Shown here: piece by piece, positions 9,947-62,804 of the stretch | How the letters are laid out: each line of letters begins with the position of its first letter | Numbering within the stretch: position 1 is the stretch's first letter | DNA from: Hemiscyllium ocellatum | Taxonomy: Eukaryota | Direction: 5' to 3' | DNA: 64,000 bases | Assembly: GCF_020745735.1 (NCBI RefSeq) | Contig: NC_083417.1 | Location: 72,602,001-72,666,000 of the forward strand | Position numbers and translations under genes: made by a program | Notes under the pieces: model-generated | Seen by the model: the letters and a program-made list of their open reading frames with translations, nothing else | Told to the model about the DNA's origin: nothing | The model's database searches: none

Positions 9947-10057
9947 CTATACTTTTCTTTGCTGCGTATCGTTTCACTATGATGAGGCTGAGCACCAATA
10001 ATATCATTCCACCTGATACATTTGCAGAAATCATCAAATACTTTGTGATCGCACGAT
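9947..10057 (-). CDS. candidate transmembrane exon (uncharged TM) of VJ-C1 receptor gene A
   Basis: Acceptor GTTGTTTTAG, donor G|GTAGGA, 111 nt, phase 1-1, in frame with C1 exon 20233. Encodes (D)RAITKYLMISANVSGGMILLVLSLIIVKRYAAKKSI(G): a hydrophobic stretch followed by a basic stop-transfer. Confidence 0.6.
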
Positions 10058-11599
10058 CTAAAACAACCAAATCACAAATATCAATTAACATTGCTTACTA
10101 TTCGTATCAGTTAACATCTGAGCAGAAAGTTAGGGTACATTAAATCATTTAGTCGTGTCTTAATGGAGTGAACATTCAACTACATTCTACTTCCCTTTGG
10201 ATTTTCAGGCTGTGATAACAATCTTACATTATTTGTTTGAAGTCCTCGTTTTTTGAAGTGAACTTGCAGAGAATATAAATCGTGGTGAGTGTTTTCTCAA
10301 TCTCCTGGAACTCTTGAGATTGGAGTGGCACATGAAACATCCATGGTTTTACTGTAGAAAGACTACTGGACCGTGTTGAGAAAAACCAATGTCAGGACAA
10401 ATGCCTGTGGGAACCATCTGCTCGTGAGACATTCTCTGCCAAACACTAGGGTTAAGGCCCAATCTCAAATGTATCTCATTCAGATCCTGAATGAGGCGTC
10501 CACTTGGATAACTATCTCAAAACCCCCTCCAATGATTCACCGGCACTCGCTTGCCCACCATTGGTGCACTGCCACACAAAATAGTGCATAATTCTCTTTA
10601 AAAGATGGAAATGTCATCTCAAAAGTCAAGACTAATATTTGTGGTACATTGTGGCCAGAACAACTGCAATGTATTGATGTGAGAAAAAGCATTGCACATC
10701 CTGTCGGTAAAATTTCTTCCTCTTCAACAAAAATCAATGGCTAAGTCTAGCAATGATCATATAATTAAAGAAAGGACATTTCTGAAATCCGGTAAACTCT
10801 CCTTAGCAACACTAGCCACAAGGTGCTAGTTGAGAAAGAATGGACCCAGCTCTGAGAGGCGCACCTCCGGCTTCACTGTAAACATGCTACTTTATCCTTA
10901 TGGCAATATACCATTTTGGGCTCCACAGCTAATGAAATGGTTATACGAGTTGTGGTCATAAGCCCATGAAATAGAAAATGAGGATTGATTTAAACTTTGA
11001 ATGAGAGAAAAGAAAATGAAAATAAAATAAAAACGACAATTAAAAGTGATGAGTCAACCCTGCATCATTTTAGCCCATGGACTTCATTTAAAGCAGAGAC
11101 CTCCACACCAGAGAGAGCATCCTGAGACACAGCAAAAGGTGTTGAACATAGCCTTGTGCAACAAAGCAAAAGTCATCTTCTTACAGCAATGAACTCTTTC
11201 AAACAAAGTAGATTCTGCAAGGGACCAGTGGAGAAATATTTTGACAGAAAGTGGTGCTGAACAGAAGTTCATACTTTAAACAGTGTTAGAATGCAATGGG
11301 ATTTCCTAGGCGTCAGTGTATCAAAGGACTGAGCAGCAATATCAGCAGAGCAATTTTTGAAGGCCACGATTGATAGGATCATTGGTAATTGTGATAGTGT
11401 ATACATACTGTAAGACAGTAGAGGACAACAGGATGAATATAAAGACTGACATCTTCAAACCGAGCCATTTAATGCACATAGCTGTGTAATGTGCACTTTG
11501 TATTAAGTAAATCAGAGATACAGTGTGATTTAATTGCATCATTCCGAGATGCATGCAAAGTCAATTGAAACTGAGGATGCAGTTTCATAAGATTTGCGA

Positions 11600-12030
11600 T
11601 GTCTGGTAAAGTAAGATGCTCTCGGATGCTCATGGAATTCTTTAACTTGCGTCGGAGTAACATTGAGTACAAAATCATGGAAGTCATATACAAATTACAG
11701 GTTAGTTCTCTGATGCAATATTATGTACAATTTAAGACACCAGAATTTCACAAGGATGTCTTTACTTGTACAGCAGACAGAAATGGTTCAAAATGATCAG
11801 TGATTCAGGTCATTTAAGGAATTTGAGACTGGAAAGGTTAGCATGAGATCAAAAATTTTTAAGAGATTGGTAAAAGGATATGGAATCATGAACATTGATC
11901 GATTGAGTAAAGTGGAATAACATCCATGCAACCAATGCATTCAAAATATTCACAAAGATGCACAAATTAAGTGAGGAGAACTATTTTCTTAAGGAGCTCA
12001 GGAAGATGCAGAAAGTTCTCACATGAAAAG
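11600..12030 (+). mobile_element. very old CR1-like 3' fragment
   Basis: IMEVIYKL..YYVQF...FHKDVF resembles CR1 EVMLQLYK...YCVQFWSP..RKDV. Confidence 0.55.
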
Positions 12031-12066
12031 TTTTTGGAAATGATTTACATTAAAAATGCAGAGAAT

Positions 12067-12379
12067 GGGGGCGGCACGGTGGCACAGTGGTTAGCACTGC
12101 TGCCTCACAGCGCCTGAGACCCGGGTTCAATTCCCGACTCGGGCGACTGACTGTGTGGAGTTTGCACGTTCTCCCCGTGTCTGCGCGGGTTTCCTCAGGG
12201 TGCTCCGGTTTCCTCCCACTGTCCAAAGATGTGCGGGTCAGGTGAATTGGCCATGCTAAATTGCCCGTAGTATTAGGTAAGAGGTAAATGTAGGGTATGG
12301 GTGGGTTGCGCTTCGGCGGGTCGGTGTGGACTTGTTGGGCCGAAGGGCCTGTTTCCACACTGTAAGTAATCTAGTCTAA
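12067..12379 (+). mobile_element. HE1-type V-SINE (young copy)
   Basis: Near-identical to 802-1114. Confidence 0.9.
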
Positions 12380-13599
12380 GTGCTTGAATCTGTGTTTTCG
12401 GTGGACTAATTTGTTGAGGTACAAATGGCACATAGTGGTATGGGAGTAAATCTGGCACCCCATTCAAAGTACCACACTGGTATGATGGACCAAATATGCT
12501 TCAGGACTCTTGGATTCTATGGATGAACTTGCTTTTTATGTTAGCATCCATGCATTCGAAGTTTGTGTAAAGGTTTGTAGCTCGGGTGATGGTTGCAGTT
12601 GTTGTGGACATGTTCACTGAGCTGCAAACCAATTTGCCAGCCCGCTGAACATTCTCACAGCAACTACACTCATTCATTCATGATGGAGGGCGCTATGTGT
12701 TCTCACGCTGATTACGACAATTACATTATGATGTCGAGGTGCTGGTGTTGGACGGGGGTGGGCAAGGCCAAAAGTCACAAACACCAGATTATAGCCATAC
12801 AGGATTGTCTTGTTATAGTTTGTGAGCTGAGCAATGTTGTTTATCCCAATTGCAGTTCTGGTGATACTCTTAAAATGAATGAAATTGACATTTGTCATTC
12901 AAAAATTTGATCCCATGAAAGGGTTTGCACTACAGGGACAGGCTAAATAAGCTGGGGCTGTCTTCCCTGGAGCATCAATGCCTATGTTTCCAACGTAGAC
13001 TGGTCCCAAAATAGTATACAAGAATCTTTTTAGATGTTTTATGAAAAGCCTATCATTTCAGCGCATCTACTGTAGCCAAACCTGGGACCAGTACCTCTGC
13101 TCTAACTGATCTTAATTAAGCATTGGGTTTATAAATGTCAACTTTATGTCAGGTCCTCCAGGATTCAAATTGATAACAAAATCTTCACGTAATGACTTTG
13201 TAAATGACAGTGTCTTGAATATTTGAGATTAATGGATGACACAAAAGGTATTGATGATCAGCTAGTATGCATTGCTGACTGCTGGAGCTGATGTTAAAAC
13301 CATACAGGTTACCATTTACAATTGACAGACACTTACATTTGTAATTACAAATGGAATATTCATTTTGTCAAAACAGCAGGGAGAGGCAGATATGGTAGAA
13401 CCTCAAGATGCATATTTAGCTGGCTTTGTAGGTGCCAATTTAAGAATCCAAGGTTTAAAAAAAATCCCCAAAGAATTGGGAATGCTGGAAATCAGAAATA
13501 AAAACAGAAATTGTTGGAAAAACTCAGAAGGTTGGCAACATCTGTGGAGAGAAAGAAGAGTCAACGTTTCAGCTCCAGAGATTTTTTTACAGACAAGAT

Positions 13600-14320
13600 G
13601 CACAGTGTATCACTCCGCAGGCATTGAACATTGAGTGCAGGTTCATAGTTCCTTGGAAGTGGAGCCACAGGTAGGTAGAATAGTGAAGAATGCGTTTGGT
13701 ATGCATTCCTTTATTGGTCAGAGCATTGTGTACAGATCATGTTGTGACTGTACAGGACATTGGTTTGGCTACCTTTGGAATATTGCGTGCAATTCTGGTC
13801 TCCTTTCTATCGGAAGGATGTCGTGAAACTTGAAAGGGTTCAGAAACAATTTACAAGGATGTTGCTAGCATTGGAGGATTTGAGCTATAGGGAAAAGTTA
13901 AATAGGCTGGAGATGTTTTCCCTGGAGCATCGGAGGCTAAGGTGTGATCTTATAGAGGTTCATAAAATCATGAGGGGCATGGATAGGATGAATAGACAAA
14001 CTCTTTTCCCTGGGGTGGGCGAGTCCAGAACTGGATGGAAAGTTTTAGAGTGAGAGGGGAAAGATATAAAAGAGACCTAGAGGCCAACGCTTTCACACAG
14101 AGGTTGGCACATGTATGGAATGAGCTGTCAGAGAAAGTGGTGGAGGCTGGTAGACTTGCAACATGTAAAAGTAATCTAGATGAGTATGTGAATAGGAAGG
14201 GTTTGGAGGGATTTGGGGCAGGTGCTGGCAGGTGGGACTAGATTAGATTGGGATATCTGGTCCAAAGGACGTGGACTGAAGGGTCTATTTCCGGGCTGTA
14301 CATCTCTATGACTCTATTAA
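13600..14320 (+). mobile_element. CR1 3' end
   Basis: ORFs 13760-14053 (EYCVQFWSPFYRKDVVKLERVQ) and 14035-14241. Confidence 0.9.
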
Positions 14321-14429
14321 AACCAAAGAGTTAGAGGAAACGATTGTGTGCCTGTCATTCAAACATTGTTGAAGTATTAGTCCCAGTTCTATAAATTAAT
14401 GTTAATCATCATGTAAGATCTATGGACAT

Positions 14430-16180
14430 CTACTTGACATCAGTTATCACAGTGGAAGACACCAGCAGCATATCAGAATTTCAATAGATTCTGGAGGCAA
14501 AGGAGAGTGCAGTGGCTGTTACAAGCAAAATGTGCTGTGGAAGCTGAAAGATCTGAAGGAAGATAAATCACCCATACCAGAAGTACAGCCATGAATTCTC
14601 ATGGAGATCATAGAGGCATTTGTGGTGATCGGTCAGGAATCGTTGGACTCAAGGGCAATAGCAAAGGACTGGAAAATAGCTGGAGTTTTACACCTGTTTA
14701 AGGGCAGCACGGTGGCTCAGGGGTTAGCACTGATTCCTCATACCGTCAGGGACCTGGGATTGATTCCATTCTTGGGTGACTGTCTGTATGGAGATTGCAC
14801 ATTCTCCCTGCGTCTGTGTGGGTTTCCTCAGGGTGCTGTGGCTTCTTCCCACAATCTAAAGATGTGCAGGTTAGATAGATTGGGCATGCTAAATTACCCA
14901 TAGCATTCAGAGATGTGTCAATTAGGTGCATTAGTCAGGGATAAATGTAGAGTAATAGGGTAGGGGAACTGATCTGGGTGGGTTACTCCTCGGAGGGTTA
15001 GTATGGACATGTTGGACCAAATGGCCTGTTTCCACATTTTATGGATTCTATGAAGGGAGGTGGGCAACAATTAGCAAACTATAGTCAATATCATGGGGAA
15101 GAATTTAAAATTTTAGATTTTTGAATTCCTTATTAAGGACAAGTTAGCATGGTAACATAAAGCTGAATCACCTGACTTTGTAAGGGGTGGGTCATGTCAG
15201 ATAAATCTATTAGAATTCTTAGCGGAGGTGAAGAGCACGTTCGAGAAAGGAAAGCCAGTGGATGTGATCTATTTGGAGTTTCAGAAGGTGCCACACAGGA
15301 GACTGCTCAATAAGATAAGAGCCCATGGTGTTCAGAGCAAGTTATTGGCTTGGACACAGGATTGGCCGACAGGTAGAAGGTAGAGAACAGAGATAAAAGG
15401 GTGTTCTCCACAATGGCAGCCAGTGACTAGTAGAGTTCTACAGGGGTCAGTGTTGGCATCAATAATATTCATAAACTATATTAACAATCAGGATGGAGGA
15501 ACTAAGATTGTTGATGTCACAAAGATTGCTGGAGTGAAAGGTCGAGTTCAGGAAGCTGGGAGACTGTGGAATGACTTGCACAGGATAGGAGAGTGGGTAA
15601 AGAAATGGCAGTTGGAATACAATACAGAAAAGTGTGAGGTTATGCATTTCAGTGGGAGAAATAGAGGCATAGAAATTTTTTATAAATGGTGAAAGGTTTA
15701 GTAAAAGTGAAACACAAAGGGACTTGCGAATCTGGGTTCTGGATTCTGGTAAAGTTTACATGCATGTTCAGGTGGTAGCTTAGACAGCAAATGCAATATT
15801 AGAAAACATTTTCCGAGGGCTAGAATGCAAGCACACAGATACACTGTTGATCAGCCTTCATTTGGAATCTTGTAAGTAGTTTTGGGCCACGTATCCAGGC
15901 ACGTTTGAGCTGTTGTTGGAAGAGGTCCAGAAGATGGTTACAAGAATGATCCACGTAGAGGACTCTAGGTTTGTACTCTATGGAGTTTAGAAGGATGAGG
16001 GGGCTTTTCATTGTAACGTTTGGGATACTGACAGGCCTGAATACAGTGATTCATTCCACAAGAAGAAGTAATCAGGAGTCAAGAGCACAGTCTCAAAGTG
16101 AAGTACGGAACTGAAATGAGAAGGAATTGTAGCCCGAGGGTGGATACTCTGTAACGCGCGCTGCTGCATAAGGTTTCAGA
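14430..16180 (+). mobile_element. fragmented old CR1 RT region with nested diverged HE1 SINE (14702-15052)
   Basis: QGSVL...FINYINN, WQLEYNTEKCEVMHF. The SINE head/core is recognisable at 14702. Confidence 0.8.
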
Positions 16181-16204
16181 TGCAAAGTCATTGAGTGTAT
16201 GTAA

Positions 16205-16600
16205 GACACATATGCACCATCCTCTACGTGAAAAAGTTTCACCTTATGTATGTGTTTAAATTTTTCCCATCGCATCCTAAACCTATACCCTCTAGTTCTG
16301 GACTTGCCCGCCCCAGGGAAATTTATCCTATCCATGCCTCTCATGATTTTATAAACCTCTATAAGGTCACCCCTCAACCTCCGACACTCGAGTGACACTC
16401 CAGCGGAGAACTGCCTCAGGCTATTCAGCTTATCCAACTAGCTCTACTCTCCAACCCTGGCAACACCCTTCTAAGTCTTTTCTGAACACTTTCAAGTTTC
16501 ACAAGATCCTTCCAATAGGAGGAAGACCAGACATTCACAAAATATTCCAAAAGTCGCCTAGCCAATTTTCTGTAAAACCGCAAATTGACAGGGTTGAGAA
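16205..16600 (-). mobile_element. CR1 3' fragment
   Basis: RRLRGDLIEVYKIMRGMDR...SRTRGYRF (ORF 16093-16437). Confidence 0.85.
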
Positions 16601-16909
16601 CCACGTCAGCAATTATCAAATGCGGAGCAGATGGGCTGAATGGTTGCACACTGCTCCTATATACTATGATCTAAGGTAAATGGATATTTTCATGAATGTA
16701 TGTCTTTTAGGTTTGGAGAAATTGGAGAATTTCAGAAATGCACGTGAGAAAGGAAGAGAATAGCGTAAAAATCTAATCAACATAATAGAAGTGAAAACAT
16801 TTTTGTGTTAGCTGAGACTTCTTCATCAAGAAAATGCGTATTGAATTTAGTTAGGTTTATTTTCACATGTACTCAGATGAGTGCAGTGAAAAGTTCACCT
16901 GCAGCCATT

Positions 16910-19560
16910 GACTGCATTGATCAGTACTGGGACCTACGATGTTGTGGTCATAACAGAGACATGGACTTCACAGGAGCACGAATCGTTGCTGGATGTTCCA
17001 GGGTTTAGATCTTTTCAAAAGAACAGGGATGGGGGAAAAAGAGGCACGAGCCAGTTTCTACCCGACTGTTGTTAGAATACTGAATGGACATAAAAAAACT
17101 CTTAACATTCCTCTGTACCTGTGTTTTCGTTTTTGCCACTGTTTACCTACTACTTACTATCTATGCTACTTAACTATGTGATCTGTCTGTATTGATAGCA
17201 AGACAAACATTTTCACTGTGCCTCAGTAGGTGTGACAACAAATTCAAGAGGAGGGAGTGTAGCATTGTAAATTAGAGAGTCCATCACAGGTGCAGAAAAG
17301 GAGGATTTGTTAACTGTGTCAGTATGGGTGGAACTCAGTAACAGGAAAGGAGTAATCACTTTATTGGTGTTTTCTAAAGACCCAACAATAGCAACAGAGA
17401 CAAGGAAGAATAGGTTGGAAAGCACATCGCAGAAAGGTGGAGACAGAAATATTGTTCTGCCTGACTTCAACTTCCCCAATATTAATTGAAACCTCTTTAG
17501 TGCAGATCGGCTGGATGGAGCTGATTTTGTCAGGTGTGTCCAGAAAGGATTCCTGACTCAATACATAGGTAAAATTAAAGTGGTGCTGGAAAAGCACAGC
17601 AGGTCAGGCAGCGTCTGAGGAGCAGGAAAATCGATGTTTCAAGCAGAAGCCCATCACCATTCCTGATGCTGCCTGACCTGCTGTGGTATTACAGCACCAC
17701 TCTAACCTCGTCTCTGATCTCCAGCATCTGCAGTCCTCACTTTCACCTACATAATATGTCGGCATTCTGACTGTGGGAAGGCCACATTGGATTTGGTGCG
17801 AGGCAATGAGCCAGGCCAGGTGTCAGATCTCTCGGTGGGAGAGCGTTTTGGTGACAGTGACCTCCTCACTTTTGCCATAGCCATGTTGGGGTTGGGGGTT
17901 GGGGAATAGGAACAGACAGTATGGGAAGGTATTTAACTGAGGGAGGAGAAATTACACTAATAGCAGACAGGAACTGTGGAGCAAAAATAGGGAACAATTG
18001 TTCTATGCAAAATGCACAATGGAAATGTGGAGGCTGTTGAAGGAGCACTTGTTGCGAGTGTTAGATAACGTTGCCTCACTGAGACAGGCAAGGAATGGTA
18101 AAGTGAAGGAGCATTGGATGACAGGACAAGGGGAGTTTCTCGTCAAGAGAGTGAAGGAAATATATTTAAAGTTGAGGAAGCAAGGACCTGGCACAGCTTT
18201 AGACAATAACAGGGTATTTTGAAAATAACTCAAAAGTGGACTGAGGAGAGTTAGGAGGGGGCAAGAAAAAGGCTTAGCAGGAATGATTAGTGAAAACCCA
18301 AATGCAGTCTACACATAATATGAGGAACATTTGAATGATCAGAGAGAGATTCGGTACAGATCATGCCTCACAAGCTTTATTGAGTTCTTTGAGGATATGA
18401 TGAGACAAGTTGATGAAGATCGAGCAGTGGATGTGGTGTATATGGATTTCAATAAGACATTTGATAAGGTGCCCCACAGCAGAAGTTTGGAGGTATGAGA
18501 CACAGGGACATGTGGTTGTCTAGATACAGAAATGGCTGGCCAAAAGAAGAAGCTGGAAAGTATTCCAACTGGTGGTTAGTGGCCAGTGGTCTCCTGCAGA
18601 GATCTGTTCTTGGGCCTCTGTTCTCTGTAGCTTTTATAAATGACTTGGATGAAGTGGAAGGGTGGTTTAGTAGGTTTTTCAATGACACAATGTTCGGTTG
18701 TGTTGTAGGTAGTGTTGCGGGTTTTGCAGGCTATAGAAAGATACTGCCAGGATGCAGAGCTAGGCTGAGAAATACCAGATGTATTTTAACCTGGATAAAT
18801 GTGAAGCGATTCATTTTGGAAGATCGAATTTGAATGCTGAATGCAGGGTTAAAGACAGGATTCTTGGCAGAGTGGGAGAGCAACAGGTATTAGGGGTCCA
18901 TGAACCTCAAAGTTGCCGTCCATGTTGATAGGGTTGTTCAGGAGACATATGGCGTTTTGTCTTTCATTAACAGGGGAATTGAGTTTAAGAGCCAAGGGAC
19001 TTTGCGGCTGTTGGAGAAAACCCTGGTTAGACCACACTTGGAATATAGTGTCCAGTTCTAGTCGTCTCATTATAGGAAGGGCATAGATGCTTCAGAGAGG
19101 GTGCAGAGGAGATTTACAAGGTCGCTGCCTAGATTGGAGGGTATATTTTACGAAGAGAGTTTGAGTGAGTTTGGGCTTTTCACACTGGAGAGAAGTTAGA
19201 GAAGTGACTTGACCGAGGTGTGCAACGTAATGAGAGGCACAGACAGAGTAGATAGCCAGAGCCACTTCCCCAGGGCAGGAATGGCTGTCACGAAGGGTCA
19301 TAATTTTAAGGTGATTGGAAGAAGGTACAGGGTAGATTTCAGAAGTAGGCAGGAAGTGGTGGGTGATGAAATGCACTGCCAGCGTTGGTAGTGAAGTCAG
19401 AGACATTAGGGACATTTAAGCGACTTCTGGACAAGCATATGGTTGGCAATAAATTGAGGGATGTGTAGGTTAGGTTGATCTTAGATTAAGATAAATGCTC
19501 AGCACAACATCGTGGGCCATAACGCCTGAATGCTGCTGTACTGTTCCATGTTCTATGTCT
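16910..19560 (+). mobile_element. degenerate CR1 ORF2 (EN to 3' end) with nested short insertions
   Basis: VWVELSNRKG, DFNFPNI, RSVLGPLFSVAFINDL. Ends in TGTTCTATG. Confidence 0.85.
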
Positions 19561-19759
19561 TAGCCATATGTTGCAGAAAAGGTATATATTTCTGATATTT
19601 TCAAGAAAGCGAAAATAAACAGAATCTTCTCCAGGTGAATTCTGATTTTCTGTCTAAAATCAAAGCCTTTGCGCAGAAAATGTCAAATAAAATTTTGATT
19701 ATTTTCTTGAAAAGAACACATTTATCATTATAAAGAGCACTCTACATGGTCCTAGCAAG

Positions 19760-20180
19760 AAAAACGTAAAAGGTTGGGACTTCTTTCTCGGGAGATTAGG
19801 AGGTTGAAAGATGACCTGATAGAAGTTTATAAAATAATGAGGGGTACAGAAATGGTGAAGGGTAGTTGTCTTTTCCCGAGAATGGGCGATTTCAAAACTA
19901 GTGGCACATTTTTAAGTTGAGAGGAGGGAGATTTTAAAAAGGCATGAGGGGCAATGTTTTTACACAGAAGTTGGTTCAAATGTGGAATGAACTTCCTGAG
20001 GAAGTGATGGATGTGAGGGCAATTACATCGATTAAAACACATATGGATAAGTCCATCAATGGGAAATGTTTGGTGGATTATGGACAAGAGCAGGCGGACG
20101 GGACTAGTTTAGTTTGGGATGAGGGTTGGCATGGATTGGTCGGACCTAAGGGTCTGTTTCTGTGTGGTATGATTCTTTGT
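19760..20180 (+). mobile_element. CR1 3' end adjacent to the C1 exon
   Basis: GNVFTQKLVQMWNELPEEV. The same insertion is present next to all three C1 copies (also ~51140-51550 and 59790-60200). Confidence 0.85.
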
Positions 20181-20232
20181 ATCACAGATTTGATGTGCGT
20201 TATTAATGATGTGGTTCCAGTAGAATTCTTAC

Positions 20233-20544
20233 CTGGGTTGCCATTCGTTACGATGTGACTGACCACGGCTGAAATTTGGAGGGTGCTGTGGGATACCATG
20301 CAGGTGTAAACAGTTCTGGCTCGGATTGCCTGTGTTTCTTCCAACCGGCTGTATGCTTCGTATAGTCTGTCGTCTATTGCGCGAATTACTGTACTGATTC
20401 CTGTTGTAGTTTTACTGCCATCTTTGTACCAAGTAAAGCTGATATCACTCGGGTAAAAAGGAGATGTGGAGCATAAAACAGCAAGGGTCACGGATGGATC
20501 TTTTCCAGGCTGCTGAGAGAGAATATTCAGTGGAGTCGGTGGAA
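20233..20544 (-). CDS. Ig C1-set constant-domain exon, receptor gene A
   Basis: Acceptor TTCACTTCCCTAG, donor G|GTAAGA, 312 nt, phase 1-1. Encodes VPPTPLNILSQQPGKDPSVTLAVLCSTSPFYPSDISFTWYKDG...VYTCMVSHSTL, with C1 hallmarks C-x4-FYP, W and YxCxVxH. Confidence 0.93.
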
Positions 20545-21175
20545 CTAGGGAAGTGAACAGGAGGAAAAAAGAAAGTTACCTCGACGTCAGAAGACGATTA
20601 CAACCCAATCTTTTGTTTCGGGCGATTGCTAGGCAGTTACTGTCCAGTTGTGGGGGAAGGTGCTCATAGAGGTGATGGGTGAACAATGCATGCTGTTGGT
20701 GTCGAGACGCGAACACAGCAAAGTATCAAAGGAAACATTAACTCATCCCTGGACAAAGCACGGGCAAGAGAACATGGACCGCTGTTATTACAGACCTCAG
20801 TTTTTCTGTTGGAAATAACTGTCGAGAGGCTCCTGAATTGGATCCATGATGTGCTATCTCCGATGGTGCAATAAGGCAGCTTTGGAAACGACTTAACAAC
20901 AGAGGGGAAAAGTAACTGATCCATAACTGACGCAGAAGCCAACGGAGTCACTTACTTATTGCAAGGCAAAGGCATGTGGAATGAACAGGACATGGCTTCA
21001 GCAGTTTTTAGATTTTAGAAATATCAGCCTTCAAAATTTTGATGTTTACACATTAAAACTACACCAGCACAAAAAAAAAGGTGCCCGGACTGTGGTGCTG
21101 GAAAAGCAGTGCAGGTCAGGCAGCATCCGATGAGCAGGAGAAACGCCGTTTCAGGCACAAAGCCCTTTATCAGGA

Positions 21176-21345
21176 ATGCTGCCCGACTTGCTGTACTTTT
21201 CAAGTCTCCTGCTTCTCGGATGCTACCTGGCCTGCGCTGCTTTTCCAGTTTCGTGCCCCTCGGATGCTCAATGGCCTGCTGTGCTTTTCCAATCTCCTGC
21301 TTCTCGGATGCTGCCTGACCTGCTGTGCTTCTCCAGCACCACACT
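21176..21345 (+). repeat. 44-nt tandem repeat (4 units) derived from the tail of a short Penelope-type element
   Basis: TGCTGCCTGACCTGCTGTGCTTTTCCAGTCTCCTGCTTCTCGGA-like units. 5 units at ~61196-61410 and 3 units at ~53044-53170. Confidence 0.85.
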
Positions 21346-29400: not shown

Positions 29401-29484
29401 ATTACTGTATCATTTCAAGTCTCTATGTCTGTAATGTTATACCCTGATTTCTGCCTAACATGCTTTCGATTTGTATCCATGATT

Positions 29485-36340: not shown

Positions 36341-36349
36341 CTGTTGGAA

Positions 36350-50548: not shown

Positions 50549-51606
50549 TGACTTCTGACATTGTCCATTTAAGGCCATCACCGACACCTCCACATCATAA
50601 AAGCCACCATAAAGCGGTAGAATTGTGTACCATATAGTCAATGAAATAAAGGTGAATGATTAAGCTGGACTGAGGTTCCCTACACTGTGGAAACAGGCTG
50701 TTCAGCTCAACAAGACCACACTGACTCTACAAAGAGTAGCCCACCCAGACGCATTCCCTTATTTCTCTACATTTTCCCTAACTAATGCACTCACACTACA
50801 GCATTTCAGCATGCCCAATCCAACTAAAATGCACATCTTTAGATTGTGGGAGGAAACTGAAGCCACCTGATGAAGGAGCAGCGCTCAGAAAGCCGTGCTT
50901 CCAAAGAACAACCTGTTGAGCTTTAACCTGGTGCTATCTGATTTGTAACTTTGTACAGTCTCTGTAATTTGCGGGGCTTACATTCTGCTGGAGGTTTCAT
51001 ATATTGTAGTCATTTATAATTATAAATAACAGACTGCAGTTAAGATCTAAACCGCCCAGCTCAAGCAATGAAACGGTTCTTGGATCCCGGACTCAGTGTG
51101 AATTATTAGTGACATGGTTCCAGTAGGATTCTAAAACAGACAAGGTTGGGACTTCTTTCTCTGGAGATTAGGAAGTTGACAGGTAACCTGATAGAAGTTT
51201 ATAAAATAATGAGGGGTACAGATACAGTGAAGGGTAGTTATCTTTTCCCTAGGATGGGTGATTTGAAGACTAGGGGCACATTTTAATGTGAGAGGAGAGA
51301 GATTTTAAAAAGGCATGGGAAGGGCAATATTTTTTAAAAGAATTTGGTTCGCATGTGGAATGAACTTCCAAAGGAAGTGATGGATGTGGGGCCAAATACA
51401 ACGTTTAAAACACATTTGGGGCAGTACATACATAGGAAAGGTTTGGCCAGGTTACGGACAAGAGCAGGCGGATGGGATTAGTTTAGTTTGGGATGAGGTT
51501 TGGCATGGACTGGTTGGAGCTAAAGGTCTGCTTCCATGCGGTATGTTTCTATGTATCACAGATTTGATTTGCTTTCTTAATGATATGGTTCCAGTAGAAT
51601 TCTTCC

Positions 51607-51878
51607 CCGTGTTGCCATTTGTTATGATGTGACTGACCGTGGAGGAAATTTGGAGAGTACTGTGGGATGCCATGCTGTTAAAAGCAGTTCTGGCTCGGAT
51701 TGCCTGCGTTTCTTCCAACCGACTGGATGCTTCGTATAGTCTGTTGTCTGTTGCTTGAATGACTGTACTGATTCCTTGTAGTTTTACTGCCACCTTTCCA
51801 GCAAGTAAAACTGATATCCCTCGGGTAAAAGGGAGGTATGGATCATAAAACAGCAAGGGTCACCGTTGGATCTTTCCT
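51607..51878 (-). pseudogene. dead C1 exon of an older paralog
   Basis: Homologous to 20233-20544 but more diverged. First Cys TGC>TGA (51843-51845), frameshift, donor GT>GG (51605-51606), and the 5' end/acceptor replaced by an insertion. Confidence 0.9.
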
Positions 51879-51879
51879 T

Positions 51880-53045
51880 GAAAATGTGTTGCTGGAAAAG
51901 CACAGCAGGTCAGGCAGCATCAAGGAGCAGGAGAATTGATGTTTCGGGCTTAAGCCTTACTTCAGGAATGAGGAGAGTGTGCCGAGCAGGCTAAGATAAA
52001 AGGTAGGGAGGAGGGACTTGGGGGAAGGGCGTTGGGAATGCGATAGGTGGAAGGAGGTTAAGGTGAGGGTGATATGCAGGAGAGGGGGCGGAGAGGTCGG
52101 GAAGAAGATTGCAGGTCAAGAAGGTGGTGCTAAGTCCGAGGTTTGGGACTGAGATATGGTGGGGAGAGGGGAAATGCGGAAGCTGGAGAAATCTGTATTC
52201 ATCCCTTGTGGCTGGAGTGTTCCTAGGTGGAAGATGAGGCGCTCTTCCTCTAGGCATCATGGCAATGGAGGAGGCCAAGTGCTTGCATGTCCTTGGCAGA
52301 GTGGGAGGGGGATTTAAAGTGTTCAGCAATGGGACGGTTAGGTTCGTTGTTGCAGGTGGCCCAGAGGTGTTCTCTGAAACATTCCGCAAGTAGGCGGCCT
52401 GTCTCCCCAATGTAAAGGAGGCCACATCGGGTGCAGCTGATGCAGTAAATGATGTGCGTGTTTGTGCAGGTGAATTTGTGATGGATATAGAAGGATCCCT
52501 TGGGGCCTTGGAGGGAAGTGAGGGGGGAGGTGTGGGCGCAAGTTTTGCATTTCTTGCAGTTGCAAGGGACGGTGACAGGAGTGGAGGTAGGATTAGTAGG
52601 GAGTGTGAACCTGATGAGGGAGTCGCAGAGGGAGTGGTCTTTCCGGAATGCTGATAAGGGAAGGGAGGAAAACATATCCTTGATGGTGGGGTCTGTTTGG
52701 AGGTGGCACAGTGATGAAATATGAGACGATGTGTCTGGAGGTTAGTGGGGTGGTAGGTGAGGACCAGTGGGGTTCTGTCCTGGTGGTGACTGGAGGGGCG
52801 GGTTTCGAGGGCGGAGGAGCAGAAAGTGGAGGAGATGTGGTGGAGAGCATCGTCAAGCACTTCCCACTTCTGAGGGGAAATTGTGGTCTTTGAAGAAGGA
52901 GGTCATTTGGGTTGTTCAGTATTGGTCCTCCAGGGAGCAGATGTGGTGGAGACGAAGGAATTTGGGAATATGGGATGGTGTTTTTACAGGAGGCAGGGAG
53001 GAGCAAGAGAATCGACGTTTTGGGCAAAAGCCCTTCATCAGGAAT
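51880..53045 (-). mobile_element. Penelope-like element 3' part with GIY-YIG endonuclease
   Basis: RTPLVLTYHP, PCNCKKCKTC, FTC..IIYCISCTRCGLLYIGETGR...REH, PIAEHF (ORFs 52250-52675 and 51991-52860). Confidence 0.9.
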
Positions 53046-56000
53046 GCTGCCTGACCTGCTGTACTTTTCCAGTCTCCTGTCCTTCGGATGTTGTCTGACC
53101 TGCTGTGCTTTTCCAGTTCCCTGCCCCTCAGATGCGGTCTGACCTGCTGTGCTTTTCCAGCACCACACTCTTGATTCTAGCCTCCAGCATCTGCAATCCT
53201 CACTTCCGCTTAAAAATAAGCCCATCAAGAAACGTCATCAACAAAAATAAACACAAATTGCTAGAGAAACCCAACAGGTCTTGCAGCATCTGTGAAAAAT
53301 CCCCAAAGAACTGTGGATGCTGGAAATCAGAAATAAAAACAGAAATTGTTGGAAACTCAGAAGGTCTGGCAACATCTGTGGAGAGAAAGAAGAGACAACG
53401 TTTCACCTCCAGAGATTTTTTTTTCAGACAAGATACGCAGTGTATCATTCCGCAGACAATTCCTTTGAACATGAAGTACAGGTTCATAGTTTCTTGAAAG
53501 TGGAGCTGCAGGTAGATAGGATAGTGGAGAATGCGTTTGGTATGCATTCCTTTATTGGTCAGAATATTGTGTACAGATCATGTTGAGACTGTACAGGACA
53601 TTGGTTTGGCTACTTTTGGAATATTGCGTGCAATTCTGGTCTCCTCCCTATCAGAAGGATGTCGTAAAACTTGAAAGGGTTCAGAAACAATTTACAAGGA
53701 TGTTGCTAGCATTGGAGGATTTGAGGTATAGGGAAAGGTTAAATAGGCTGGAGCTGTTTTCCCTGGAGCATCGGAGGCTAAGGTGTGATCTTATAGAGGT
53801 TCATAAAATCATGAGGGGCATGGATAGGATGAATAGACAAACGCTTTTCCCTGGGTTGGGCGATTCCAGAAATGTATGGCATCGTTTTAGAGTGAGAGGG
53901 GAAAGATATAAAAGAAACCTAAAGGCCAACACTTTCACACAGAGGGTGGTACGTGTATGGAATGAGCTGTCAGAGAAAGTGGTGGAGGTTGATATACTTG
54001 CAACATGTAAAAGTAATCTGGATGGGTATGTGAATAGTAAGGGTTTGGAGGGATATGTGGCAGGTGCTGGCAGGTGGGACTAGATTGTGTTGGGATATCT
54101 GGTCCAAAGGACGTGGACTGAAGGGTCTATTATCCGGGCTGTACATCTCTATGACTCTATTAAAACCAAAGAGTTAGAGGAAACGATTGTGTACCTGTCA
54201 TTCAAACTTTGTTGAAGTATTAGTCCCAGTTCTAAAAATCAATGTTTAACATCATGTCAGATCTATGGATATGTACTTGGCATCAGGTATCACAGTGGAA
54301 GACACCAGCAGCATACCAGAATTTCAAGAGATTCTGGAGGCAAAGGAGAATGCAGTGGCTGTTACATGCAAAATGTGCTGTGGAAGCTGAAAGATCTGAA
54401 GGAAGTTAAATCACCCATACCAGAACTACAGCCCTGAGTTCTCAAGGAGATAGTTAAGGAGATCATAGAGGCATTTGTGGTGATCGGTCAGGAATCGTTG
54501 GACTCAAGGACAATAGCTGAGGACTGGAAAATCGCTGGAGTTATACACCTTTTTAAGGGCAGCACGGTGGCTCAGCGGTTGGCACTGATTCCTCATACCG
54601 TCAGGGACCTGGGTTTGATTCCATTCCTGGGTGACTGTCTGTGTGGAGATTGCACATTCTCCCTGCGTCTGTGTGGGTTTCCTCAGGGTGCTGTGGCTTT
54701 TTTTCCCACAATCTAAAGATGTGCAGGTTCGGTAGATTGGACATAATAAATTACCCATAGCATTCAGAGATGTGTCAATTAGGCGCATTAGTCAGGGATA
54801 AATGTAGAGTAATAGGATAGGGGAACTGATCTGGGTGGCTTACTCCTCGGAGGGTCAGTGTGGACCTGTTGGACCAAATGGCCTGTTTCCACATTTTATG
54901 GATTCTATGAAGGGAGGCAGGCAACAGTTAGCAAACTATAATCTACATCATGAGGAAGAATTTAGAATTTTAGATTATTGAGTTCCTTATTAAGGACAAA
55001 TTAGCATGGTAACATAAAGCTGAATCAGCCTGACTTTGTAAGGGGTGGGTCATGTCAGACAAATCTAATAGAATTCTTTGCAGACGTAAAGAGCACATTC
55101 GAGAAAGGAAAACCAGTGGATGTGATCTATTTGGAGTTTCAGAAGGTGCCACGCAGGAGACTGCTCAATAGAATAAGAGCCCGTGGTGTTCGGAGCAAGG
55201 TATTGGCTTGGACAGAGGATTGGCTGAGTGGTAGAAGGTAGAGAACAGAGATAAAAGGGTGTTTTTAACAATGGCAGCCAGTGACTATTAGAGATCCACA
55301 GGGGTCAGTGTTGGCATCAAAAATATTCATAAACAATATTAACAATCAGGATGGAGGAACTAAGCTTGTGGATGTCACAAAGATTGCTGGAGGGAAAGGT
55401 CGAGTTCAGGAAGCTGGGAGACTGTGGAATGACTTGCACAGGATAGGAGAGTGGGTAAAGAAATGGCAGTTGGAATACAATACAGAAAAGTGTGAGGTTA
55501 TATATTTCAGTGGGAGAAATAGAGGCATAGAACTTTTTTATAAATGGTGAAAGATTTAGTAAAAGTGAAACACAAAGGGACTTGCGAATCTGGGTTCTGG
55601 ATTCTGGTAAAGTTTACATGCATGTTCAGGTGGTAGCTAAGACAGGAAATACAATATTAGTAACCATTTTCCGAGGGCTAGAATGCAAGCGCACCGATAC
55701 ACTGTTGATCAGCCTTCATTTGGAATCTTGTAAGTGGTTTTGGGCCACGTATCCAGGCACGTTTGAGCTGTTGTTGGAAGAGGTCCAGAAGATGTTTACA
55801 AGAATGATCCAGGTTTGTACTCTATGGAATTTAGAAGGATGAGGGGGCTTTTCATTGAAACGTTTGGGATACTGACAGGCCTGAATAGAGTGAATGTGGA
55901 GAAGATCATTTCACAAGAAGAAGTAATCTGGAGTCAAGAGCACAGTCTCAAAGTGAAGTACGGGACAGAAATGAGAAGGAATTGCAGCCCGAGGGTAGAT

Positions 56001-59000
56001 ATTCTGTAAATTGCGCTGCTGCATAAGGTTTCAGATGCAAAGTCATTGAGTGTATGTAAGACACATATGCACCATCCTCTAAGTGAAAAAGTTTCGCCTT
56101 ATGTATGTGTTTAAATTTTTCCCATCGCATCCTAAACCTATACCCTCTAGTTCTGGACTTCCCCGCCCCAGGGACATTTACCCTATCCATGTCTCTCATG
56201 ATTTTATAAACCTCTATAAGGTCACCCCTCAACCTGCGACACTCCAGTGACACTCCAGCGGAGAACTGCCCCAGGCTATTCAGCTTATCCAACTAGCTCT
56301 ATCCTCCAACCCTGGCAACATCCTTCTAAGTCTTTTCTGAACACTTCCAAGTTTCACAAGATCCTTCCAATAGGAGGAAGACCAGACATTCACAAAATAT
56401 TCCAAAAGTCGCCCAGCCATTGTTCTGTAAAACCGCAAATTGACAGGGTTGAGAACCACGTCAGCAATTATCAAATGCGGAGCATATGGGCTGAATGGTT
56501 GCACACTGCTCCTATATACTATGATCTAAGGTAAATGGATATTTTCATGAATGTATGTCTTTTAGGTTTGGAGAAATTGGAGAATTTCAGAAATGCACAT
56601 GAGAAAGGAAGAGAATAGCGTTAAAATCTAATCGACAGAAGAGAAGTGAAAACAGTTTTGTGTTAGCTGAGACTTCTTCATCAAGAAAATGCGTATTGAA
56701 TTGAATTAGGTTTATTTTCACATGTACTCAGATGAGTGCAGTGAAAAGTTCACCTGCAGCCATTGACTGTCCAATCTTAGGTACAAAGGTACCTTGGTAC
56801 AGAATCTCAGCAACATGTCAGAGGAGAGGGTAGTTGCTGAACAGGCAGAAATAGAATTCAGACGGTCTGTCAGGAAGGATACACAATTGATAGAGCAAAG
56901 TTAGGGGTTAATGCATGTCTGTTTCAATGCAAGGAGTGTCAGGAATAAGAGTGTTAAACTTCACGCATTGATCAGTACTTGGACCTACGATGTTGTGGTC
57001 ATAACAGAGACATGGACTTCACAGGAGCACGAATGGTTGCTGGATGTTCCAGGGTTTAGATCTTTTCAAAAGAACAGGGATGGGGGAAAAAGAGGCACTA
57101 GTCAGTTTCCACACTACTGTTGTTAGAATACTGAATGGACTTAAAAACTCTTAACATTCACCTGTACCTGTGTTTTCGTTTTTGCCACTGTTTACCTACT
57201 ACTTACTATCTATGCTACTTAACTATGTGATCTGTCTGTATTGATAGCAAGACAAAGATTTTCACTGTGCCTCAGTAGATGTGACCATAAATTCAAGAGG
57301 AGGGAGAGTCGCATTGCTGATGAGAGAGTCCATCACAGCTGCAGAAAAGGAGGATTTGTTTACTGTGTAAGTTTGGGTGGAAGTCAGTAACAGGAAAAGA
57401 GTAATCGCTTTATCGGTGTTTTCTAAAGACCCAACAATAACAACAGAGAGAAGAAAGAACAGGTTGGAAAGTATATCGCAGAAAGGTGGAGACAGAAATA
57501 TTGTTCTGCCTGACTTCAACTTCCCCAACATTGATTGAACTCTTTAGTGCAGATGGTCTGGATGGAGCTGATTTTGTCAGGTGTGTCCAGAAAGGATCCC
57601 AGACTCAAGACGTAGGTAAAATTAAAGTGGTGCTGGAAAAGCACAGCAGGTCAGGCAGCGTCTGAGGAGCAGGAAAATCGATGTTTCGAGCAGGAGCCCT
57701 TCACCATTCCTGATGCTGCCTGACCTGCTGTGCTTTTACAGCACCACTCTAACCTCGTCTCTGATCTCCAGCATCTGCAGTCCTCACTTTCACCTACTTA
57801 ATATGTAGGCAGACTGACTGGGGGGAGGCCACATTGGATTTGGTGCGAGGCAATGAGCCAGGTCAGATGTCAGATCTCTCGGTGGGAGAACGTTTTGGTG
57901 ACAGTGACCTCCTCACTTTTACCATAGCCATGGGGGGGAATAGGAACAGACAGTATGGGAAAGTATTTAACTGAGGGAGGAGAAATTACACTAAAATTAG
58001 ACAGGAACTGTGGAGTATAAATAGGGAACAATTGTTCTATGCGATATGCACAACGGAAATGTGGATGCTGTTGAAGGAGCACTTGTTGCGAGTGTTGGAT
58101 AACGTTGCCTGACTGAGACAGGCAAGGAATGGTAAAGTGAAGGAGCATTGGATGACAATAGAAGAGGAGTCTCTCGTCAAGAGAGTGAAGGAAACATATT
58201 TAAGGTTGAGGAAGCAAGGAGCTGGCACAGCTTTATACAATAAGAGGGTAATTTGAAAATAACTCAAAAGTGGACTGAGGAGAGCTAGGAGGGGGCACGA
58301 GAAAGCCTTAGCAGGAATAATTAGTGAAGACCCAAATGCAGTCTACACTTAATATGAGGATGATTTGAATGATCAGAGAGAGAGATTCGGTACAGATCAT
58401 GCCTCACAAGCTTTATTGAGTTCTTTGAGGATATGATGAGACAAATTGATGAAGATCGAGCAGTGGATGTGATGTATATGGATTTCAATAAGACATTTGA
58501 TAAGGTGCCCCACAGCAGAAGTTTGGAGGTATGAGACACAGGGACATGTGATTGTCTAGATACAGAAATGGCTGGCCAAAAGAAGAAGCAAATGGTAATG
58601 GATGGAAAGTATTCCACCTGGAGGTTAGTGGCCAGTGGTCTCCTGCAGAGATCTGTTCTTGGGCCTCTGTTCTTTGTAGCTTTTATAAATGACTTGGATG
58701 AAGTGGAAGGGTGGGTTAGTAGGGTTTTCAATGACACAATGTTCGGTTGTGTTGTAGATAGTGTTGCGGGTTTTGCAGGCTATAGCAAGACACTGCCAGG
58801 ATGCAGAGCTAGGCTGAGAAATAGCAGATGTATTTTAACCTGGATAAATGTGAAGCGATTCATTTTGGAAGATCGAATTTGAATGCCGAATGCAGGGTTA
58901 AAGACAGGATTCTTGGCAGAGTGGGAGAGCAACAGGTATTTGGTGTCCATGTACCTCAAAGTTGCCGTACATGTTGATAGGGTTGTTCAGGAGACATATG

Positions 59001-60254
59001 GCGTTTTGTCTTTCATTAATAGGGGGATTGAGTTTAAGAGCCAAGGGACTTTGCGGCAGCTCTATAAAACCCTGGTTAGAACACACTCGGAATATTGTGT
59101 TCAGTTCTAGTCGCCTCATTCTAGGATGCTTCAGAGAGGGTGCAGAGGAGATTTACAAGGTCGCTGCCTAGATTGGAGGGTATATCTTACGAAGAGAGGT
59201 TGAGTGAGTTTGGGCTTTTCACACTGGAGAGAAGTTAGAGAAGTGACTTGATCGAGGTGTAATGAGAGGCACAGGCAGAGTAGATAGCCAGAGACATTTC
59301 CCCAGGGCAGGAATGGCTGTCATGAATGGTAATAATTTTAAGGTGATTGGAAGAAGATACAGGGTAGATTTCAGAAGTAGGCAGGAAGTGGTGGGTGATG
59401 GAATGCACTGCCAGCGTTGGTAGTGAAGTCAGAGACATTAGGGACATTTAAGCAACTTCTGGAGAAGCATATGGTTGGCAATAAATTGAGGGATGCGTAG
59501 GTTAGGTTGATCTTAGATTAAGATAAATGCTCAGCACAACTTCGTGGGCCGAAAGGCCTGAATGCTGCTATGTTCTATGTCTTAGCTATATGTTGCAATA
59601 AAGGTATATATTTCTGATATTTTCAAGAAAGCGAAAATAAACAGAATCTTCTCCAGGTGAATTCTGATTTTCTGTCTAAAATCAAAGCATTTGCGCAGAA
59701 AATGTCAAATAAAATTTTGATTATTTTCTTGAAAAGAGCACATTTATCATTATAAAGAGCACTCTACATGGTCCTAGCAAGAAAAACGTAAAAGGTTGGG
59801 ACTTCTTTCCCGGGAGATTAGAAGGTTGAAAGATGACCTGATAGAAATTTATAAAATAATGAGGGGTACAGAAACGGTGAAGGGTAGTTGTCTTTTCCCG
59901 AGAATGGGCGATTTCAAAACTAGTGGCACATTTTTAAGTTGAGAGGAGGGAGATTTTAAAAAGGCATGAGGGGCAATGTTTTTACACAGAAGTTGGTTCG
60001 AATGTGGAATGAACTTCCTGAGGAAGTGATGGATGTGGGGGCAATTACATCGATTAAAACACATATGGATAAGTCCATCAATGGGAAATGTTTGGTGGAT
60101 TATGGACAAGAGCAGGCGGACGGGACTAGTTTAGTTTGGGATGAGGGTTGGCATGGACTGGTCGGACCTAAGGGTCTGTTTCTGTGCAGTATGATTCTAT
60201 GTATCACAGATTTGATGTGCGTTATTAATGATGTGGTTCCAGTAGAATTCTTAC

Positions 60255-60566
60255 CTGGGTTGCCATTCGTTACGATGTGACTGGCCACGGCTGAAATTTG
60301 GAGGGTGCTGTGGGATACCATGCAGGTATAAACAGTTCTGGCTCGGATTGCCTGTGTTTCTTCCAACCGGCTGTATGCTTCGTATAGTCTGTCGTCTATT
60401 GTTCGAATGACTGTACTGATTCCTGTTGTAGTTTTACTGCCATCTTTGTACCAAGTAAAGCTGATATCACTCGGGTAAAAAGGAGATGTGGAGCATAAAA
60501 CAGCAAGGGTCACGGATGGATCTTTTCCAGGCTGCTGAGAGAGAATATTCAGTGGAGTCGGTGGAA
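60255..60566 (-). CDS. Ig C1-set exon, copy B (open frame, splice sites intact)
   Basis: 312 nt; about 5 nt differences from copy A by eye. Confidence 0.85.
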
Positions 60567-62252
60567 CTAGGGAAGTGAACAGAAGGAAAAAAGAAAGTTA
60601 CCTCGACGTCAGAAGACGATTACAGCCCAATCTTTTGTTTCGGGCGATTGCTGGGCAGTTACTGTCCAGTTGTGGGGGAAGGTGCTCATAGAGGTGAGGG
60701 TTGAACAATGCGTGCTGTTTGTGTCGAGACGCGAACACCGCAAAGTATCAAAGGAAACATTAACTCATCCCCGGACAAAGCACGGGCAAGAGAACATGGA
60801 CCGCTGTTATTACAGACCTCAGTTTTTCTGTTGGAAATAACTGTCGAGAGGCTCCTGAATTGGATCCATGATGTGCTATCCCCGATGGTTCAATAAGGCA
60901 GCGTTGGAAACGACTTAACAACAGAGGGGAAAAGTAACTGATCCATAACTGACACAGAAGCCAATGGAGTCACTTACTTATTGCAAGGCAAAGGCACGTG
61001 GAACGTACAGGACGTGGCTTCAGCAGTTTTTAGATTTTAGAAATATCAGCCTTCAAAATTTTGATGTTTACACATTAAAACTACACCAGCAAAAAAAAAG
61101 GAGCCCGGAGTGTGGTGCTGGAAAAGCAGAGCAGGTCAGGCAGCATCCCATGAGCAGGAGAAACGACGTTTCAGGCAAAAAGCCCTTTATCAGGAATGCT
61201 GCCCGAACTGCTGTACTTTTCAAGTCTCCTGCTTCTCGGATGCTACCTGGCCTGCTCTGCTTTTCCTGTCTCCTGGCCCTAGGATGCTCCCTGACCTGCT
61301 GTGTCTTTCCAGTCTCCTGCCCCTCGGATACTCAATGACCTGCTGTGCTTTTCCAATCTCCTGCTTCTCGGATGCTGCCTGACCTGCTGTGCTTCTCCAG
61401 CACCACACTCTTGATTCTAGCCGCCAGCATCTGCAATCCTCACCTTTGCTTAAAAATACACCCGTCAAGAAATGTCATCAACAAAAATAAACAAACATTG
61501 CTGGAGAAATTCAACCAGTCTGGCAGCATCTGTGAAAAAGGCAGGGTTAAAACGTGGGCACCAGGGAACCTTCTTCTGAACTATCAACTATGAGCAAAGA
61601 GGATGTCAAAAATAAATCAACAAATATGATCAAATCTGTGTCACCCGCGACGGGCTATTACTCTTCACCAATATCATTGAAAAAATTGTCGGAGCAAATT
61701 TTTCCAGACACTGGAATCTTTACTGAAAGCAACAAATGCTGGCGATCACAGCAGGTCAGACAGCATCCGTGGAGAGAGAGCAAGTTAACGTTTAGATGAC
61801 CCTGGATAAGGGCATGTATCTTTTCATCATATTTCAAGAGTGCTTGAGTTTCCTGCTTATGTCCCACGGCTGTATAATTCAGGTACATTTGATGACACAT
61901 CATTCTAAACTATTGAAACACTGAACATGAAGGACAGCAGTCAGTGGTGCAATTTAACTGTAGGCATGTATTAGGAACTGTGGAGATGTCTCCAAGGAGA
62001 GCACGCACACCTCCTGCCATTCGGACCTGCTTGGACACTATGTCACCCAAAACATACAGCAACGTTGCTGACTCTCAATAACTCTCCCAGTTGAACAAGG
62101 AAACCACTCAGTTCAAGGATAATTGCGGTTGGACAAAAATGTTAACTTGCCATTGAAGAACATACAACATCAAATACATTGTTAATAAATCCTGTAATGT
62201 GAACTTTTCCAAGCACACCTGAGAATTGCTTAACTTTCACTTTCATACATAC

Positions 62253-62573
62253 CCAACACTGTTAAATTGGACCCTGTTCCGTTTCCAATCAATTTGCCTT
62301 GACGGACGATTGTGCAATAGTACATTCCTCTGTCCTGTACATTGACATTGAATATCTGAAGGAAGCCACTGTATTTATTTTTGCGGCCAGTTACTTTTCG
62401 TTCATCTTGTTCCACGTTGAGATAATGAGGATCACCTTGCTTCCACCAGATTACCTTGACAGCTTGGTCGATTTGAAAAGAATGAAGTCAGCACTGGAAG
62501 GACACATTTGCACCCACAGGTTCAGTCACGTTCACTGGTAACTGGGTCACTTTATCCCTGATTACTCCAGACA
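62253..62573 (-). pseudogene. VJ exon, copy B, with nonsense codon
   Basis: 321 nt, splice sites intact. TGG>TGA at 62488-62490, immediately after the first Cys. Confidence 0.88.
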
Positions 62574-62751
62574 CTAGAGAAAGAGACAGTCACACACAAA
62601 TTAGCAAGATTAAATAAAAGAGTTAAAAGAGTGCAGTTCAGAAATTGACTTAAACTGTCCAAAGGAGAACAGTACAGAATATATTAAATAAAGATTAAAT
62701 AAGAGCTCGACTTTATGGAAAGGCAGTATACTGTAGAAAGAGAGAAAATAC

Positions 62752-62804
62752 CTGGGAAAATTGCTGTCTGAAAAAAGACAGAAAAGTGCAATACTCAGGA
62801 ACAT
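62752..62804 (-). pseudogene. leader exon, copy B, 2-nt deletion
   Basis: 53 nt versus 55 nt in copy A (TGTCTCTTTTTT > TGTCTTTTTT), which makes it phase 2 and out of frame with V. Confidence 0.8.

Follow-up and report, generated by a model that had tools for sequence, protein, structure and literature searches.

A SIRP-like locus of the epaulette shark with an intact inhibitory-type receptor gene and the probable remains of an activating-type hybrid

Does a locus at which near-identical ectodomain exons stand upstream of two different transmembrane (TM) exons encode a working pair of inhibitory and activating receptors, or does it keep the traces of a pair that has come and gone? The question is raised by a piece of the genome of the epaulette shark, Hemiscyllium ocellatum (assembly GCF_020745735.1, contig NC_083417.1, positions 72,602,001 to 72,666,000 of the forward strand). 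These 64,000 nucleotides are called the window below, and all coordinates count from its first nucleotide. An earlier inspection of the letters without database searches, referred to here as the sequence-only reading, had proposed an activating/non-activating pair evolving by ectodomain shuffling. We found an intact receptor gene (gene A) of a SIRP-like family, and a copy of its ectodomain exons (copy B) that lies upstream of an exon encoding an arginine-bearing TM segment (the Arg-TM exon). We read the locus as a record of how a paired receptor was born and died: the inhibitory gene A has stayed intact, while an A-derived hybrid, B, would have arisen in front of the Arg-TM exon and is now dead; we put the probability of this reading at roughly 0.7.

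The receptor genes of the window all lie on the minus strand. Two long direct copies, A at 13460–23932 and B at 53295–64000, are 93–96% identical (95.4% outside the exons). Copy A comprises the region upstream of the gene, the leader, V and C1 exons and 6.8 kb of the intron between the C1 and TM exons; block B is at least 10.5 kb long and extends past the end of the window. Leader, V-set and C1-set exons are present in each copy on the minus strand (Pfam E-values of about 1e-11 for V and 1e-12 for C1), and the two ectodomains are nearly the same, with 6 differences in the 321 nucleotides of the V exon and 5 in the 312 of the C1 exon. Both TM exons, an uncharged one (type 1) at 9947–10057 and the Arg-TM exon (type 2) at 45596–45738, are outside the duplicated block, and each has an AG acceptor in phase 1, which is the phase of the C1 donor. 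The duplication breakpoints show that the ectodomain exons were copied without the tail exons. Hidden Markov models (HMMs) of the type-1 TM exon, of the exon with the immunoreceptor tyrosine-based inhibitory motif (ITIM) and of the type-2 TM exon matched a single place each, so that the window has one of each kind; the 3' side of gene A lacks a type-2 exon, and that of B lacks a type-1 or ITIM exon. Between the start of gene A and the Arg-TM exon (24000–45500, about 21 kb) neither tblastn nor the HMMs found any immunoglobulin-domain or other family exon; this interval contains retroelement fragments only. The layout is thus much as the sequence-only reading had described it, with ectodomain exons that differ by some 5–6 nucleotides each, two TM exons in frame with C1 and a duplicated block that excludes both.

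Gene A consists of six exons, running from 22738 to 5149 on the minus strand; they encode a leader, a V domain of the VJ type, a single C1 domain, and an uncharged TM segment followed by a tail. Their splice translates exactly to H. ocellatum XP_060693846.1 (P0165, 321 amino acids), which RefSeq names 'SIRP beta-1-like', and GCA_020745735.1 likewise gives the gene a span of 17,590 bp. Exon 1 (leader, 22684–22738) begins with the ATG at 22738, has a phase-1 GT donor and is included in the exact protein match. Exon 2 (22185–22505; Pfam V-set, E = 9.9e-12) ends in a J-like GNGTGSNLTVL, with V and J in one non-rearranging exon, and exon 3 (20233–20544; Pfam C1-set, E = 1.4e-12) has a phase-1 donor. 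Exon 4 (9947–10057) encodes the type-1 TM segment, with a membrane-proximal KRYAAKK. It is 54% identical to the TM region of the Heterodontus protein P0013 (tblastn, E = 3e-6) and is the sole match in the window to the type-1 TM HMM (E = 4e-13). The splice of leader, V, C1 and exon 4 is identical to XP_060693846.1 over 266 residues; copy A does continue, as had been proposed, into an uncharged TM exon with a further donor, and the RefSeq model uses that exon.

The remaining two exons, all on the same strand, were located by homology to Heterodontus relatives. Exon 5 (7465–7505) is a small cytoplasmic exon with a GC donor (AAG|gcaagt) and, because its acceptor is of the NAGNAG kind (alternative start at 7508), RefSeq lists isoforms X1 and X2. 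Exon 6 (5149–5274 for the coding part with its stop codon) encodes a tail with TPYAAL and VVYAQI, and matched both the Heterodontus tail (tblastn, E = 1.5e-8) and the cytoplasmic HMM (E = 3.7e-12). VVYAQI fits the established ITIM consensus, and TPYAAL resembles an ITIM or an immunoreceptor tyrosine-based switch motif. Given an uncharged TM segment and a putative ITIM tail, gene A is by its sequence an inhibitory-type receptor. The term 'non-activating' used for copy A in the sequence-only reading was right about the lack of a charge in the TM segment; it understated the case, as the two further exons (7465–7505 and 5149–5274) bring in the ITIM. The product of gene A is 80% identical to Chiloscyllium plagiosum XP_043563380.1 and 54–58% identical to Heterodontus members. 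The C. plagiosum model P0167 ends by read-through of the same exon 5 GC donor and may be a truncated model without the ITIM exon.

Copy B cannot make the corresponding ectodomain. Its leader exon (62752–62804, minus strand) has 53 nucleotides in place of 55, as one TC unit of (TC)2 has been lost next to 62777; this 2-nucleotide deletion puts the donor out of phase with the V exon. All six differences in the V exon (62253–62573, minus strand) change the protein, none being silent, and one of them is a nonsense change (TGG>TGA at 62488–62490). The C1 exon of B (60255–60566, minus strand) is open, has kept its splice sites and differs from that of A by three synonymous and two non-synonymous changes. 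In this assembly the shifted leader frame and the nonsense codon of the V exon make copy B a pseudogene. One member of the would-be pair carries an ITIM tail, and an exon for a charged TM segment and a short tail lies downstream of the other; reading frames are intact in A, while B carries two lesions, and the locus as assembled has no functional activating/inhibitory pair. The layout proposed earlier, an ITIM gene A beside a B ectodomain upstream of an Arg-TM exon, is real, and the pair as such fails on the frameshift and the TGA in B.

We tested the Arg-TM exon in three ways, because hydrophobic open reading frames (ORFs) arise easily in AT-rich DNA, and this one is an ORF of 47 codons in such DNA. 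The exon (45596–45738, minus strand; PRF-NILR...IVDH) follows a phase-1 ttttag acceptor and ends in a 23-residue tail and a stop. Among about 190 relatives, its translation aligned to the TM regions of five proteins with Smith–Waterman scores of 55–67, compared with a maximum of 48 for shuffled queries. The five proteins, from Heptranchias perlo, Carcharodon carcharias, Chiloscyllium punctatum, Scyliorhinus canicula and Heterodontus francisci, have two features in common, an Arg close to the outer end of the TM segment and a D/E-H pair at its inner end. An HMM was built from these five segments, leaving out the window sequence. Of 2113 six-frame ORFs of the window, it ranked ORF 45599–45769 (minus strand) first with E = 5e-10, the runner-up having E = 0.015. 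The five members had been picked for their resemblance to the query, and hence we scored additional members found with an unrelated query: P0200, P0201 and P0202, which are not in the HMM, obtained 35–36 bits, and the window exon 35.7 bits. The exon has the outer Arg, the inner D/E-H pair and the short tail of type 2, a TM type that annotated family proteins from five orders of sharks also have. As judged from sequence, these comparisons show a genuine type-2 TM exon of the family, in keeping with what the sequence-only reading had seen in an Arg-TM exon with a short tail.

[quoted passage not shown] The motif N-x-x-R in the TM segment marks FcR-gamma-coupled receptors of tetrapods (PMC2413239, PMC4536121), and the Arg of the window exon stands in an N-I-L-R context; the remaining type-2 TM segments from sharks have a different residue in place of the Asn. 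A survey from 2014 reported no FcR gamma homologue in sharks (PMC4016189), and our literature search for shark SIRP-like genes and for ITAM adaptors in sharks returned nothing relevant beyond that survey.

To what family do these exons belong? A phmmer search with the V exon retrieved about 250 relatives. The best single-domain matches are RefSeq proteins of sharks, rays and chimaera annotated as SIRP alpha-like, SIRP beta-1-like and similar; RefSeq names the family 'tyrosine-protein phosphatase non-receptor type substrate 1-like' or 'SIRP beta-1-like', and gene A belongs to this chondrichthyan SIRP-like VJ-C1 family. Of the relatives, 95 have a complete ectodomain; a type-1 TM segment is present in 40 of these (28 with ITIM-like and 12 with short tails) and a type-2 segment in nine. 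We built a maximum-likelihood tree of 41 ectodomains, having set aside 46 rows with unclassifiable tails as well as near-identical isoforms, and rooted it at the midpoint for drawing only. On this tree the type-2 label changes five times, at least four of the changes being forced by well-supported branches, and type-2 and ITIM proteins appear as sisters at short distance (P0043 with P0173, and P0202 with P0204). The label changes and the close sister pairs argue that tails have been exchanged against ectodomains repeatedly, and tail swapping is recurrent in the chondrichthyan SIRP-like family. Ectodomain shuffling as a general idea, put forward by the sequence-only reading, is supported by the four or more changes that the tree needs. 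Annotated proteins of either TM type exist in other sharks, and none in our sample joins an A-clade ectodomain to a type-2 segment.

The DNA between B and the Arg-TM exon holds the remains of a third copy, which we call relic C. At 53295–53299 the end of block B, equivalent to A-position 13460, abuts the equivalent of A-position 21475, the two sides sharing a run of five A residues only. Beyond this B/C junction lies a 267-nucleotide piece of a V–C1 intron (53033–53299, minus strand; 84% identical to A 21212–21475), and further on a third A-like C1 exon, at about 51605–51880 on the minus strand, which is 86% identical to A over 257 nucleotides. This exon is older than B, lies between B and the Arg-TM exon and is heavily decayed: its acceptor and 5' end are lost, the codon for the first Cys is now TGA, two nucleotides are deleted, the second Cys has become Ser and the donor GT has become GG. 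It gave no Pfam match. That the Arg-TM exon is intact and typical of the family beside so decayed a C1 exon is an indirect sign that it may still have been used not long ago.

The DNA around the junction, which is non-homologous, is rich in repeats. Homologous recombination in a shared repeat was considered as its origin and rejected, as the parental sequences have no more than the A5 run in common. In all three copies the V–C1 intron contains tandem repeats of about 44 nucleotides each (21070–21400, 61090–61400 and 53044–53160), and the array adjoins the junction. As a separate observation, the Amblyraja radiata model XP_032892405.1 (P0004) has a V-C1-C1-TM layout with two nearly identical C1 domains, resembling what B and relic C would have produced had both C1 exons been spliced in.

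From these exon structures, lesions and breakpoints, and from the family membership of both TM exons, we infer an order of events in which the Arg-TM exon was spliced first to C and later to B. The type-2 TM exon would once have served C, an older A-like paralogue upstream of gene A and in the same orientation. At least 10.5 kb of gene A, from its upstream region to 6.8 kb into the C1–TM intron, would then have been copied into the V–C1 intron of C, through a junction with microhomology only. The resulting hybrid B would have had a fresh A-like ectodomain upstream of the Arg-TM exon. The C1 exon of C would have decayed, and B would have gained the 2-nucleotide leader deletion and the V-exon TGA, so that no receptor is made from it.

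Several observations weigh against this history, and some of them would favour a B that is alive. B could encode an activating receptor that works, with some 276 residues for leader, V, C1 and Arg-TM, and that forms a functional pair with A, its lesions being assembly errors or a null allele. Indeed, the C1 exon of B, every splice site of B and the Arg-TM ORF are intact, the exon phases match, and the Arg-TM exon scores like functional family members. Both lesions were read from a single assembly; a null allele could explain them, and assembly errors are less likely for two independent sites. In addition, the exons of B are diverged from A less than the block on average (1.9% versus 4.6% for the rest of the block; Fisher p = 3.5e-4). 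This low divergence is possibly regional and not due to selection, because the entire stretch at 22–23 kb is equally similar (1.8%), and it could reflect a recent death of B. Purifying selection on B is not supported: the V and C1 substitutions comprise seven replacements and one nonsense change versus three silent ones, which is about the neutral ratio, and the low divergence around V spreads into the flanks. A living B would also have to live with two independent disabling changes in its first two exons and with a V exon in which six of six differences alter the protein. No matching protein was present in the RefSeq-derived and other collections searched. When P0165 was searched against 5.8 billion protein clusters, the matches were gene A, the orthologue from Chiloscyllium and family members further away; none of them had a B-type ectodomain or an A-like ectodomain joined to an Arg-TM segment. 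Finally, 14.5 kb with a dead C1 exon and a long interspersed nuclear element (LINE) separate the C1 exon of B from the Arg-TM exon, a distance that speaks against a working B. We consider a functional B improbable.

The opposite possibility is that B was dead on arrival, a tail-less partial duplicate of A that landed beside an unrelated and already orphaned Arg-TM exon, with no hybrid transcript ever made. The neutral pattern of substitutions in B and the non-homologous junction in repeat-rich DNA would be expected in that case. The acceptor of the Arg-TM exon is weak too: its pyrimidine tract is poor, and a nearer, stronger-looking AG lies 7 nucleotides downstream, out of frame. The half of the tree with gene A has no sampled annotated type-2 member, and relic C is A-like; in other sharks the sampled A-clade ectodomains carry type-1 TM segments only, and the ectodomains of annotated Arg-TM proteins belong to the opposite half. 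Because the A-like half has no sampled type-2 member, the original owner of the Arg-TM exon is uncertain. An ORF that is still open and has full family similarity next to a heavily decayed C1 exon is not what one would expect of an exon orphaned long ago. In addition, two A-like C1 exons follow one another upstream of it, correctly oriented and in matching phase. A stillborn B is thus an unlikely account of the locus, and we prefer the birth and subsequent death of a hybrid receptor.

The LINE between relic C and the Arg-TM exon (46291–49699, plus strand) is apparently complete. Its ORF1 (175 codons) has a GDSL-esterase domain. Endonuclease and reverse-transcriptase domains are encoded by ORF2, whose 861 codons are not interrupted by a stop, which points to a possibly young element. 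A more degraded LINE copy is found at about 1820–2960. Copies of a repeat resembling a short interspersed nuclear element are present at 805–1110, 12078–12379, 35095–35399 and 41818–42104, and their translation matches the C-terminal 25–65 residues of Scyliorhinus canicula XP_038663089.1 (P0002). The tail of P0002 looks repeat-derived, either as an exonised element or as an annotation artefact. CA/TG and CT microsatellites at about 1550–1760, 4200–4260 and 29750–29980 appear in translation as HT and SL runs.

Much of what the locus shows was known before. Paired receptors with rapid birth and death are familiar from mammals, birds, frogs and bony fish, and gene A itself is annotated. A large SIRP-like V-C1 family of cartilaginous fish with two conserved types of TM/tail exon is mildly new; the literature that we searched contained no paper on it. 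So is the fact that a single locus shows, with exact breakpoints, how an activating-type hybrid would be made by ectodomain duplication and then decay. There is no new mechanism or functional novelty here, and the case is ordinary but instructive. It can illustrate how clusters of immune receptors evolve and serve as an entry point to the question of which adaptor a shark Arg-TM segment uses.

How does the locus compare with known receptor systems? By sequence, the closest solved structures to the shark ectodomain are UrIg2 (9dmx, E = 9e-18) and SIRP alpha (2wng, E = 5e-16), followed by antibody chains; NCBIfam gave no match, as expected for a bacterial and archaeal library. SIRP alpha and UrIg2 match about equally well, and the likeness to SIRP is one of sequence and layout. 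As in mammalian SIRPs, of which SIRP alpha is inhibitory and SIRP beta-1 activating, the V domain stands at the N-terminus, ends in a J-like strand and precedes a C1-set domain (Pfam V-set and C1-set), an inhibitory member has tyrosine motifs in its tail, and a sister form combines a near-identical ectodomain with a basic TM residue and a short tail. Mammalian SIRP tails carry ITIMs that recruit SHP-1 and SHP-2, a role for which VVYAQI would be a candidate in the shark. Unlike SIRP, which has two C1 domains, the shark gene has one, and the tyrosine motifs of gene A number two instead of four. The basic residue also differs: SIRP beta-1 uses a mid-membrane Lys for DAP12, whereas the shark Arg is near the outer end of the TM segment, in this exon in an N-x-x-R context.

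In the UrIg and UrIg2 genes of elasmobranchs, too, C1-type domains come after a VJ exon that does not rearrange (the V-C1-C2-C3 part of UrIg2 is 9dmx). UrIg is secreted and has VJ and three C1 domains, and UrIg2 has VJ, nine C1 domains and a TM segment (PMC12227049). The shark locus, in contrast, has a single C1 domain, an ITIM tail or an Arg-TM segment, and a large multigene family around it; identity with UrIg or UrIg2 was rejected on the number of C1 domains.

The Arg-TM exon can be compared with the TM segments of the N-x-x-R receptors coupled to FcR gamma (LILRA2, PIR-A, NKp46, GPVI, OSCAR, Fc-alpha-R and Xenopus XFL), with which it shares N-I-L-R at the outer end and a short tail. Xenopus FcR-like genes also have two types of TM exon, one charged with a short tail and one uncharged with a tyrosine-motif tail (PMC2413239, PMC4536121). 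The shark type-2 segments differ in conserving the Arg and the inner D/E-H pair, not the Asn. A bolder proposal would make the Arg/DH exon the cartilaginous-fish counterpart of the N-x-x-R module for ITAM adaptors; sharks would repeatedly renew short-lived activating receptors by placing copies of inhibitory-gene ectodomains in front of it, and the locus would keep two rounds of this, relic C and then B. We offer this tentatively and think it rather doubtful; if true, the two-TM-exon logic of paired receptors would predate the split of cartilaginous and bony fish.

The KIR, LILR and Ly49 clusters are rapidly evolving sets of paired receptors with hybrid and decaying members. The epaulette shark locus resembles them in that an activating-type gene would have been made from copied ectodomain exons of an inhibitory neighbour and would quickly have become a pseudogene. 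It differs from them in belonging to a cartilaginous fish and to a V-C1 family, and in that two nested generations of donor C1 exons can still be seen upstream of a single TM exon.

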